A stretch of 63,512 bases of DNA, filler included, from Calcarisporiella thermophila CBS 279.70 (GCF_041956535.1; 12 parts of 11 records of this genome joined end to end with filler, not necessarily neighbours in it); one strand, 5' to 3'. Shown: positions 1-3,188, counted from the whole stretch's first letter. Notes: generated by a model from the sequence alone, not told the origin. Numbers and translations are program-made.

Positions 1-1037
1 AATGGTGTGCAAAAGATGTATCAGTGAACATAACGTTGTCCAATTGTGAAAAAAGATAGGGAAATGGGTGCATTACTTAGCTACACTGTTCTTCACGATA
101 ACTTCATAGGCACTTTTTAATGCTATGGCATGGGCAAGTAGAGGAATATATTCTAACCAGACAATGAAAATAAGCAAACGGCCAAAAATTCAAAATTTTG
201 TTGAAGGGTATTTAAGCTACAAGCATGGTAGTGGCCTTACCTGCCTTAGGAACAATTTTCCATTGAAAACTTGTGGAGTACTGTATAACTCTATCTCGAT
301 AATTAGTCTTGAAGGCTTAAGAACAAGGACGAACTTTGGGTCTGAACTAAATCATCTTAACAAGATGTTAGGCAAGTATTCGTTGAAAAACCTCTCGGAA
401 GTATGCAGTCGCAAGTCTTTTCTATATATATTATCAGAGAAGCCTCTACTAAATAATAGGGATTAGCTTGGCGATAAAGGAGAAAAGTAAAAGGATCGAT
501 TTGTTGGAAAATTGCAAAAGTCAAATATACATATTTGGCAATTTCAACCCCCTGTGTTTCGGATATTTTTTTTGTAAACATTCTCGATATATGCATGGAT
601 GGAAAGGCTAGACCTTGTATTTTATATTAATGAAGTATCAAATATTAGTTTAGATAAATAAAATAGATATTAATGTGTTTAGTAAAACACCTCAATTTCA
701 TATACATTCGTGCAGCATACTGTAGCTAGAGGAAGAGGAAAAGTCCTCCAAACTCATCTGACTATTCTTCTGCGAAGAGGATAGTAAGAAACGAGATTTA
801 ATCTGTGAAATAAAACGAGGAATAGATGTGGAGCAAAGAAGCGTAAAAATGGTTTCGAGAATAAATATTCTTGAATATATATTGTATTTTTAAGGAAATT
901 TAATACGGTTGCAGAGAGTTCTGAAACGCTGATTCTTCAAAATCTAAATGCGGTATGTCTGATCAAGCCTGGAAACTCCCAATTCATTGTCTTCGAAAGA
1001 ACCTATTTGAGTACCCGATCAAGGTTCTCCTGTATTT

Positions 1038-1670
1038 CATCTTGAAGCGTGGACTGCTGATAGAGTCGGCAGTCTATTGCATCTAAATGAAAAACCGAGT
1101 GCCGCTATCACTGAATTTAAATTCCGATAGACATTTCCCATAGAAATCACTTTACAACAAACCACTATTAAGGGAGAGGACCTTGGGAACGATGCCTAAA
1201 GGGCATCTGCTTGTGAAGGCTAATTCCATTCGGGCTCTCGCCTGAAAGAAATTCACCGATTGGTCAAAAACATAAATAAGATATATATATTTCCATTGGA
1301 GGCTTTAAAATATATAAAGAATCGAATAGAATTGCGCCTGAAACATCGATCCGTGCTTAACCTATGACCCAAATTTGAAAAGAATGGTTGAAATCAATTC
1401 AACTGATTCAAGTTCATGTGGATAATTATAAACCCCGGTATGCATAGTTCACGTCCATAATATTCTATGTGTTTGGGTATTCTAGGTTTATTATAGCAAT
1501 AGTATTTAAAGTCAACGTCATTTTCTATTATGAAAGAAATGTTCTCGATATCGTACAAGAAAAGAACAGAGAGTTCTCTTATAATAAATTCGGGTAAAAT
1601 TGCTGAGATATTCCCTTTGTTTAGTTTAGTGTATGCGACGGCTTAAGTGTGATGGGCAAAGCAAAGTCAG
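1038..1670. repeat. Degenerate DIRS terminal/ICR remnants
   Basis: 1038-1077 resembles 3893-3932. 1631-1670 resembles 3951-3990. 1182-1224 resembles the reverse complement of 50272-50319. Confidence 0.6.
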
Positions 1671-1945
1671 TTGTCTAATATCTCAGTTTTAGGCGTTATA
1701 TAGGGAATGACAAAATTCTTAAACCGAAATATATTTAATATGAATTTGTATTGCAAAATATCTTTTTCTCGGAACCAAAAATATTTCACGGTGCAATATA
1801 TGGCAACCAGTGATATGTAAAATTTCAGCCTTAAAATTGTATAAATATGCGAGTTAGTAAAATCAAATTCTTTTCAACAATCTACTATACACTATAAATT
1901 ATCTATCAAAGATTTACCTCCTATTTTCACCAACAACCTGAATTG

Positions 1946-3188
1946 ATGCCCATCGATAGTGCGATAGCTATTAATGAATTATTAGATGAAGTGGCTCAGG
2001 CTGCGAAGCAAAATACATTGAGTGAACTTAATTCAACAGCACACAATTGGGTTTGCGGACGGTGTTACAGCGATGAGACATGTGCATACTATAACTTAGC
2101 AGTAGGGTCAACGGGTCGGACGAGAAGAGACCTTGATGTCAATTGGGAACATCCTCGTTTAGCTGAAAACGGGATTGACAACTCAATAGAAAGTGCAAAT
2201 GGTTATGCGTGCCTACTCACGGATCGAGCGGCAGGCTTATTTTCATATTTCAATAGTCATATTACCCATGGATTAGACACTCTATCTGTAGATCGCACTG
2301 CCATAATAGCTGCTATTACGCAGTTTGACGCAAACGAACATGGCATGTCTCTAAAGCTGGATTATACTGATTGGGCGGAAAAGGGTGATTCTAGTATAAC
2401 CGAAATTTGCAATTACGTATTGCGGGATACTCTGCAGTGGGTTTACAGCTGGATGGGTTATATACCATCACAACAATATGGTGTTTGGTATGTTGCTTAT
2501 ACGACTATATGTGACGATTTGGCTATTCCACCAAAAGATTTGATGCAGGGGCACTTCAAAATAGGCGGCCTATCACTAGAGAAATGGGTAAAAGGCGCAT
2601 ATGAGGTCGGGTACACAACTCCTGTGCTTCGGTGCATGCTCGGATTATTACTTAGAGAATATATCTTTCAGTATCTTGAAAAGGCGTGGGTGACAGCAAA
2701 TTTAGATTTCAGAAGGATTTATACAAATGGAGCTAGATCTTTAAATTGCGATACGGCTTTTAGAGTAATGGGTGCTGATGTTCAAGGATGTGCAATTGTC
2801 ATCCTACACTACTCAGGTCAGAATGCGAGCTGGCAGAGTATATGCGCATCCGCCATAGGTTGTTGTCTCTCTATGGACTTTGCAAAGCGGAGACTCGGAG
2901 TTCTGCAGAGGGACCGAACACTAGCTGTGGAAGGGGGACCCGATTTAGAAAAAGTGCCTCATAGTGCCCAGATGTGTGCCGTGATCGCAGAGCTGTGCCA
3001 AGGAAAGGCTCCACGAGTACTTCTCCGTTATGGCACGTCAGGACTTCATTATGTGTATCTACTAGAGCGTTATCACGAGCGTCTGAATATGAGACGTGAA
3101 GGAATTTCGTCGCTGGTCAAAGAGTGGTGGGGCGCTATGATGGAGCAACATCAGTTTCCAGTAAATAACCAAATTAGAAGGCCTAATT
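1946..3188 (+). CDS. AsR6-like non-canonical class I sesquiterpene (humulene-type) synthase; 3' end cut by contig end
   Basis: Intronless ORF of >=414 aa. Ordered motifs LRDTLQW, ICDD, QYLEKA, FRVMGADVQGC, CLSMDFAK..LGVLQRDRT and LRYGTSGLHYVYLLERYHER parallel the AsR6 motifs as I recall them (MRDSLSW, IPDD, QWLEKA, YRVLTANTLGC, CVTLDMAK..MGILQGERT, RRYGSAGLHYVPMMDRYLER). Confidence 0.8.

Follow-up and report, generated by a model that had tools for sequence, protein, structure and literature searches.

We found that the intronless ORF at the end of contig C6 of Calcarisporiella thermophila encodes, judging by its sequence and modeled fold, an AsR6-type terpene cyclase in the broad sense (class IC of PMC11234867). 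Terpene cyclase activity is very probable on these grounds, and Mg2+-dependent cyclization of a prenyl diphosphate is predicted. Genes for an HMG-CoA reductase (HMGR), an IPP isomerase (IDI), a methyltransferase, and a P450 lie 5 to 14 kb upstream on the same contig, the whole spanning ~15 kb. On balance, we favor a reading in which these ~15 kb form a sesquiterpenoid cluster not described before, with the cyclase at its core; farnesyl diphosphate (FPP) would be cyclized, oxidized, and O-methylated.

The window is the whole stretch of DNA that was analyzed (63,512 nucleotides with filler, joined from 12 parts of 11 records of this genome). The part that holds the cyclase is the final 3188 bases of contig C6 (1,270,426 bp), from an assembly of 28.2 Mb in 116 contigs, and the stop codon of the cyclase lies beyond the assembly (Table 1).

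Table 1. Features of the cyclase locus. Plain coordinates are window positions; those marked C6 are contig positions.
Feature	Coordinates	Strand	Remarks
AsR6-type (class IC) terpene cyclase gene, predicted	1946..3188	+	Intronless, at least 414 aa, cut by contig end
Cyclase ORF on contig C6	C6:1269184 to contig end	+	
Interspersed repeat	1..725	.	Six other full- or near-full-length copies, 91-99% identity, on C8, C10, C11, C20, C23, and C49
Second, shorter high-copy repeat	723..985	.	More than 20 genome matches
Short repeat fragments	1037..1235	.	Pieces at 1037-1078 and 1145-1235
Probable promoter region	1236..1945	+	AT-rich, essentially single-copy; almost no matches elsewhere in genome
N-terminal H33-x3-C37-x2-C40-x5-C46	2042..2083	+	Motif scan across 36 homologs
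W165, equivalent of AsR6 W138 (aromatic cavity wall)	2438..2440	+	Alignment; role from PMC8457177
D190-D191; D190 equivalent to AsR6 D164 (ligand of both Mg2+)	2513..2518	+	Alignments
R273, equivalent of AsR6 R240 (diphosphate ligand)	2762..2764	+	Multiple alignments
M310-D311-x-x-K314	2873..2887	+	K314 equivalent to AsR6 K289
M310, putative stereo-gate, Met type			Equivalents AsR6 L285, EupR3 M261, Lpg1 M254
R375-Y376-x-x-R379, equivalents of AsR6 R350/Y351/R354	3068..3082	+	RY pair, diphosphate ligands
Shortened HMGR	C6:1255664-1257740	-	Pfam HMG-CoA_red
IDI	C6:1258812-1259992	+	Extra copy
MitM/RebM-like SAM methyltransferase	C6:1260206-1261048	-	Pfam methyltransferase domain
P450	C6:1261963-1263779	+	Pfam p450
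Transposon remnants, 5.4 kb	Between P450 and cyclase		Window repeats, a masked 1.8-kb stretch, and a retroelement remnant

Reading frame, fold, and active site of the cyclase

The frame that opens at ATG 1946 stays open as far as the sequence goes, over 414 codons with no stop and no need for an intron, as the first-pass annotation had described; an in-frame stop lies 16 codons before this ATG. The public gene model (P0001, window 2345-3160) covers residues 134-405 only (272 aa) and starts at Met134. Lacking the conserved N-terminal third, it is probably a mis-annotation. We take ATG 1946 as the real start because the N-terminal His/Cys motif is conserved. The cyclase is single-copy and is the sole AsR6-like gene in the genome.

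The DNA upstream of the ORF had been called transposable-element debris. This was partly right: positions 1-985 are multi-copy repeats, and the fragments at 1037-1235 also turn up at and close to the termini of a DIRS-type retroelement that lies 14-17 kb upstream. Positions 1236-1945, by contrast, are essentially single-copy and are probably the cyclase promoter; TATA-like hexamers lie ~50 and ~105 nt upstream of the cyclase ATG. A promoter scan of the upstream DNA gave chance-level results with a bacterial model, which is not applicable to a fungal host. The ORF at 125-466 inside the first repeat has no Pfam match. DIRS-type retroelements around the cluster (L003:2817-6389, L005:6932-9998, and L069:3371-7557) carry a reverse transcriptase, an RNase H, a Dam-like methylase, and a tyrosine-recombinase-like ORF.

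Pfam and NCBIfam scans of the cyclase returned no family and no canonical terpene synthase profile, so that standard scans are blind to it, and a regular-expression search for DDxxD/E, DxxxD, and NSE/DTE came back empty. Both points had been anticipated in the first-pass annotation, as had homology to AsR6. AsR6 was the sole significant phmmer match among PDB sequences (E 1.5e-19, 73 bits, residues 148-381). The AlphaFold model of the cyclase (pLDDT 75, pTM 0.84) matched AsR6 in Foldseek (prob 1.0, TM 0.63) and in VIA-align (Z 33.7, 335 residues, rmsd 3.3, ~20% structural identity), and the next-best fold matches were canonical class I cyclases at Z ≤12.9. Because model residues 14-409 align to AsR6 chain residues 8-384, the whole ordered part of that protein, we consider the catalytic domain complete despite the cut at the contig end. 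A fold search of the ESM Atlas gave nothing above TM 0.35, and a feature search pointed, as a lead only, to an unnamed "terpenoid synthase" cluster at 0.95.

In AsR6, D164 binds two Mg2+ ions, and the ammonium group of the essential K289 replaces the third; R240, R350, Y351, and R354 are diphosphate ligands, W138 is a cavity wall, and Leu or Met at position 285 decides between 2E- and 2Z-humulene (PMC8457177). We found by alignment that every AsR6 ligand given in that study has an equivalent in the cyclase (Table 1), and the nine residues singled out earlier (D190, D191, E245, K246, R273, D311, K314, R375, and Y376) are all at the positions claimed for them. D190 and K314 are nearly invariant among 32 homologs. 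The cavity-proximal residues D278, Q280, C306, and C307 differ from those of clades A and B (defined below).

All full-length proteins of clade B, a second subfamily, carry the N-terminal His/Cys motif. The clade B profile matches cyclase residues 16-49 and the clade A profile does not; an hhalign comparison gave E 4e-4. H33, C37, C40, and C46 are a probable structural metal site. We looked for the zinc site of AsR6 (H41/C43/C85/C87, HxC...CxC), and the motif scan found no HxC or CxC in the cyclase.

FPP is likely to be the preferred substrate. By analogy with characterized relatives, M310 predicts a 2Z/nerolidyl route, and the chemistry is probably conventional sesquiterpene cyclization. Humulene, in either isomer, is doubtful as the main product. 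The product cannot be named as humulene from the sequence because Lpg1, with the same Met, makes longipinene, and it cannot be transferred from relatives because identity to them is too low (≤33% over the tree alignments). An FPP cyclase of the humulene synthase family had been proposed for this ORF; the family assignment stands, and the humulene part was overstated, given a position outside the AsR6 clade, a different N-terminal motif, and a Met gate. We rejected a narrow-sense AsR6-like humulene synthase of the tropolone clusters, a group made up of AsR6, PycR6, EupR3, and EupE, on the zinc motif, the clade, and the cluster.

Relatives, phylogeny, and host

A full HMMER scan of 1.84 billion representatives returned 41 relatives at E ≤1e-3, and a word-indexed homolog search recovered only the cyclase itself. 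The named relatives include proteins of Aspergillus, Penicillium, Hirsutella, Ophiocordyceps, Nemania, Sarocladium, and Cladorrhinum, as well as of Mycena, Martensiomyces, Basidiobolus, Streptomyces, Amycolatopsis, and Nonomuraea. We also scanned bacterial genomes by pattern and found 25 actinobacterial loci with ~50% identity to the Streptomyces protein. No relative exceeds 33% identity to the cyclase over the tree alignments, and phmmer local matches reach ~39-43%.

Our trees gave three clades. Clade A is fungal and includes AsR6 by bit score (317 bits for one member); the trees themselves were built without AsR6, EupE, and Lpg1. Clade B (45 bits to AsR6) joins actinobacteria with scattered ascomycetes, its members coming from Streptomyces, Amycolatopsis, Kitasatospora, Microtetraspora, Hirsutella, Nemania, and Aspergillus indologenus; we found no functional study of any member in the literature searched. 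Clade C (33 bits to AsR6) holds Nonomuraea, one more bacterial protein, and Basidiobolus. In the careful tree, the cyclase falls outside clade A (97/95) and outside clade B (100/99), as a long-branched sister of clade B with weak support (94/89) and an end branch of 1.6; a position as sister to clade A was not rejected (p-AU 0.087). The same tree ruled out a cyclase nested in the ascomycete AsR6 clade or in clade B. Clade A and clade B profiles score the cyclase at 169 and 180 bits, above their scores for each other's members. In these comparisons, the cyclase is a separate deep lineage.

The patchy occurrence of the family, the lack of introns, and the many bacterial kin make an old horizontal acquisition likely. 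A quick tree with Martensiomyces was unstable, and because it was outscored by constrained trees in which the cyclase was the neighbor of clade A or of Martensiomyces, we claim neither a donor nor a direction. A recent bacterial transfer was ruled out by the GC3 of 0.38 and the long branch. Horizontal acquisition had been raised as a possibility in the first-pass annotation and is plausible in this form. The same annotation had the family reaching beyond the ascomycetes into an early-diverging fungus. The host is early-diverging, but the cyclase is not unique outside the ascomycetes, given its relatives in actinobacteria, Mycena, Basidiobolus, and Martensiomyces.

Several relatives deserve mention in their own right. 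Actinobacteria commonly carry AsR6-type cyclases (L032-L056, the 25 loci of the pattern scan, and a separate P450-linked Nonomuraea clade), and we found no paper that describes them. In the literature searched, which excluded most subscription journals, no AsR6-type enzyme was reported in Mucoromycota or bacteria, nor was this cluster. The catalytic Lys and/or the RY pair is lost in AsR6 relatives P0015, P0021, P0029, P0030, and P0035 (the two named ones are from Penicillium), which suggests an inactive or repurposed subfamily. The AsR6-type genes of Basidiobolus (P0034) and Martensiomyces (P0032) sit on branches other than that of the cyclase; the Basidiobolus gene groups with actinobacteria (100/100) on a 2.3-kb contig, where contamination is possible.

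C. thermophila is a thermophilic member of the Mucoromycota (PMC11393059). We found that the HMGR on C6 groups with three other Calcarisporiella HMGRs in a tree (97/97), and the HMGR on C16 is 100% identical to VTP21DRAFT_3033 of C. thermophila. The GC3 of the cyclase (0.38) lies within that of the cyclase and cluster genes together (0.34-0.41); three housekeeping genes have 0.49-0.70, and an actinomycete homolog has 0.90. Because the C6 HMGR is of host type, the flanking repeats occur on six other contigs, and GC3 is like that of the neighbors, we concluded that the locus is native to C. thermophila. Ascomycete contamination was ruled out by the native-type HMGR and by the repeats common to other contigs.

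The upstream genes and the alternative readings

The cyclase, tailoring, and precursor genes are physically linked in the assembly, by a link that crosses repeats, where a mis-join could have occurred. The genome has four HMGR genes and two IDI genes, and the copies on C6 are host duplicates. Compared with housekeeping HMGRs of 1130-1148 aa, the C6 HMGR keeps the catalytic domain, and its membrane part consists of fragments matching residues ~1-55 and ~250-330. Pfam gave no match to a sterol-sensing domain, and we infer that the shortened enzyme may escape sterol feedback. The C6 (L008:1116-3192) and C20 (L007) HMGR duplicates are both fast-evolving and have lost most of the membrane/sterol-sensing domain. 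In the IDI gene, exons 1-3 keep the frame, have GT-AG borders, and contain no stops, exon 4 matches the copy on C24 without stops, and the exon structure equals that of the C24 copy. A ~270-bp element occurs at 93% identity inside IDI intron 3, where it is harmless (L002:2189-2449), and in the coding region of a P450 on C40 (L066:1048-1319). The cluster P450 reads as 524 codons in four in-phase exons with GT-AG borders and no stops. Searches with the spliced neighbors used one exon at a time.

The C6 methyltransferase (VTP21DRAFT_10251) is intronless, is divergent from the P450, and lies 8 kb upstream of the cyclase. In the structural database, it matches MitM best, together with enzymes of the RebM type and SpnF-like ones, at E 8e-60 to 2.5e-40; matches to BezA, a C6-FPP methyltransferase, and a GPP methyltransferase are weak (E 5e-15 to 4e-10), and the NCBIfam GPPMT model scores 74 bits versus a cut-off of 400. 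Because the score is far below this cut-off, we read the gene as a tailoring O-methyltransferase. Beyond the three Calcarisporiella copies, its named relatives are all bacterial and nearly all actinobacterial, at ≤47% identity, and the gene is probably an old horizontal acquisition. We checked the surroundings of two close bacterial relatives and saw no terpene gene beside either: one is next to a polyketide synthase, and the other is next to further methyltransferases and to oxidoreductases. No close homolog of the methyltransferase was found at any of the 25 actinobacterial AsR6-like loci.

The cluster has no prenyl synthase, so the context does not set the chain length of the substrate; a GGPP synthase lies elsewhere in the genome. 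In the 60 kb upstream (downstream is beyond the contig), we found no tropolone NR-PKS, oxygenases, or hetero-Diels-Alderase, which bears out the earlier report of no tropolone genes nearby. Genome-wide KS matches comprised one A-PCP-KS hybrid (checked with Pfam) and two loci classed by reading, one FAS-like and the other rich in introns with a KS only. No tropolone PKS was found in the genome, and a tropolone-sesquiterpenoid role for the cyclase was rejected. The A-PCP-KS hybrid is an NRPS-PKS on C3 (L078, C3:1185804-1189262). Farther upstream on C6, 45-60 kb from the cyclase, is a partly masked multi-module NRPS that ends in two carrier domains plus a hydrolase of the FSH1 type; a P450 comes next (L031-L030, C6:1207239-1223100).

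According to the favored model, the spare HMGR and IDI would raise IPP/DMAPP flux, with FPP supplied by a housekeeping FPP synthase. By the chemistry of AsR6, D190 would hold two Mg2+ ions and K314 would replace the third, and R273, R375, Y376, and R379 would grip the diphosphate, the departure of which would yield the farnesyl cation. Met310 may favor the nerolidyl/cisoid route from that cation to 2Z-humulene or a polycycle. The P450 would then hydroxylate the hydrocarbon, and the methyltransferase would O-methylate it. That the neighbors act in the same pathway as the cyclase is, in our judgment, probable.

We found parts of the same gene set elsewhere in the genome. The start of C20 carries, in mirror order, a Zn2Cys6 factor, a P450 (62-66% identity), a methyltransferase (71-74%), an HMGR (90%), and another, related Zn2Cys6 factor (pieces L028, C20:1-10000, and L023-L024, C20:20808-27972). 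A third methyltransferase is on C74 (3.2 kb, L058), and the start of C40 (L066, C40:1-4055) lies inside a third, interrupted P450, probably a pseudogene, followed by an MFS transporter. No cyclase lies beside the C20 HMGR-methyltransferase-P450 copy in the assembly. All module copies are at contig ends, and the end of C6 has no terminal overlap with C20, C40, or C74. We offer, as a speculative and rather improbable extension, that these ends form one repeat-broken supercluster, a mosaic of bacterial-type and host genes that would make a new sesquiterpenoid skeleton with a cyclase family largely bacterial in origin. On the flanks of one deep-branching class IC cyclase, it would hold as many as three diverged modules of P450 plus methyltransferase, both shortened HMGRs, an extra IDI, two Zn2Cys6 regulators, and an MFS exporter. 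Two further loci were seen. On C40 (L067:2753-9382), three or four genes in tandem encode related proteins of ~340-360 aa that look secreted and have repeated WRGP/WNGP-type motifs (the one tested has no Pfam match). On C5 (L077:1141-2100), an intronless 319-aa gene matches TRI5 weakly (E 5e-5, below cut-off) and contains DDY and the NSE-like motif NDAMSVYKE; it probably encodes another class I terpene synthase, a divergent one.

The cyclase had been proposed as a stand-alone system for volatile terpenes. The P450, the methyltransferase, and the extra IDI and HMGR on the same contig argue against this, and we consider it unlikely that the cyclase is a stand-alone volatile sesquiterpene synthase whose neighbors serve another pathway or were joined to it by chance or mis-assembly. 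It is true that 5.4 kb of repeats separate the cyclase from the P450 at the end of a contig in a repeat-fragmented assembly, that no cyclase accompanies the methyltransferase-P450(-HMGR) module on C20 and C74/C40, that several fungal and most Streptomyces homologs lie outside obvious clusters, and that the weak TRI5-like gene on C5 might serve as the partner instead. However, it is unlikely by chance that a pair of dedicated mevalonate duplicates and a pair of tailoring genes should lie no more than 14 kb from the sole AsR6-like gene in 28 Mb, the cyclase and its neighbors have a common codon composition, and the module copies, all at contig ends, may be one fragmented region. Still less can be said for a contaminant or a decaying pseudogene, which we regard as extremely improbable. 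The contig end, the repeat-rich setting, the lack of a close relative, the partial public model, and the decayed C40 P450 copy would fit it, but the gene sits on a 1.27-Mb contig with a native-type HMGR and with repeats found at 91-99% identity on six other contigs, its GC3 is 0.38 like that of its neighbors versus 0.90 in the actinomycete homolog, and its 414 codons have no stop and keep all catalytic residues intact.

Two other readings keep the cluster and change its chemistry. It is quite unlikely that the cyclase is a cluster enzyme that acts on GPP or GGPP or releases an acyclic product such as nerolidol or farnesene. The deep separate branch with its end branch of 1.6, the divergent D278, Q280, C306, and C307, and the GGPP synthase elsewhere in a genome whose cluster holds no FPP synthase would allow it; against this, AsR6, EupR3, and Lpg1 all use FPP, and the fold aligns over its whole length. 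A methyltransferase, a cyclase, and precursor genes are also the layout of sodorifen/2-methylisoborneol-type systems. By that precedent, the methyltransferase would C-methylate the prenyl diphosphate first and give noncanonical C16 (or C11) terpenes, and the weak matches to BezA and to the C6-FPP and GPP methyltransferases point the same way. We consider this very unlikely, since the MitM, RebM-type, and SpnF-like matches are far stronger, the GPPMT score is low, and neither bacterial relative that was checked has a terpene gene nearby.

Comparison with known systems

In a survey of Mucoromycota, most of the clusters were of squalene, GGPP, and carotenoid genes, and no more than four homologs of type-2 terpene synthases turned up (PMC8070225). 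The cluster described here comes from a thermophile in this cyclase-poor lineage; its cyclase is possibly heat-stable, and its pathway can be tested directly. Because the cyclase has no Pfam or NCBIfam match, profile-based mining is blind to the cluster. The cyclase forms a separate branch of a family whose few characterized members are all ascomycete, and at least three clades with many actinobacterial members make the family a wider target for mining. The family also allows a test of how generally Lys stands in for Mg2+ in the active site and how far the Leu/Met gate rule reaches. If the supercluster is real, it has no class IC predecessor in Mucoromycota in the literature searched.

AsR6 is the 2E-humulene synthase of Sarocladium schorii (PDB 7OC4, 7OC5, and 7OC6). 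Like AsR6, the cyclase has the fold over the whole ordered chain, equivalents of D164, K289, R240, R350, Y351, R354, and W138, and no DDxxD or NSE motif. Unlike AsR6, it has Met for Leu285, another N-terminal His/Cys motif, and ~20% structural identity to that enzyme; it lies outside the AsR6 clade, has no tropolone PKS or Diels-Alderase neighbors, and belongs to a Mucoromycota host. The Met stereo-gate and the catalytic Lys are shared with the 2Z-humulene synthases EupR3 and EupE (PMC8457177), compared here by description. These two are ~50% identical to AsR6 and have the AsR6 zinc motif and tropolone clusters, whereas the cyclase has neither motif nor clusters.

Lpg1, the ent-beta-longipinene synthase of the Aspergillus aculeatus lpg cluster, requires M254 and K258 (PMC13213483). 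Like Lpg1, the cyclase is of the AsR6 family, has the Met/Lys pair that is essential in Lpg1, and has no tropolone cluster. The Lpg1 product is hydroxylated by a P450, and the cyclase has a P450 neighbor, for which the same role is predicted. Lpg1 is 42-49% identical to AsR6 and EupE, has a C-terminal membrane helix, and is partnered with an HR-PKS and an acyltransferase, whereas the neighbors of the cyclase are HMGR, IDI, P450, and methyltransferase.

With clade B, the cyclase shares the H-x3-C-x2/3-C-x5-C motif, the Met gate, and the catalytic residues, yet it is excluded from that clade (100/99). The clade B homolog of Streptomyces sp. NPDC001941 adjoins a full mevalonate operon, two P450 genes, and canonical terpene synthases. 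Both bacterial clade C genes come after a P450, and the AsR6-like genes of Martensiomyces and A. indologenus have P450 neighbors; most Streptomyces clade B genes and those of A. wentii and Hirsutella show no obvious cluster. The neighboring methyltransferase resembles MitM/RebM/AveD-type enzymes in its match to MitM (E 8e-60), its 41-44% identity to actinobacterial proteins, and its lack of introns; unlike them, it occurs in three copies, in a fungal genome, and beside terpene genes. We concluded that the enzyme kind itself is already known and that what is new is a class IC variant in an undescribed type of cluster.
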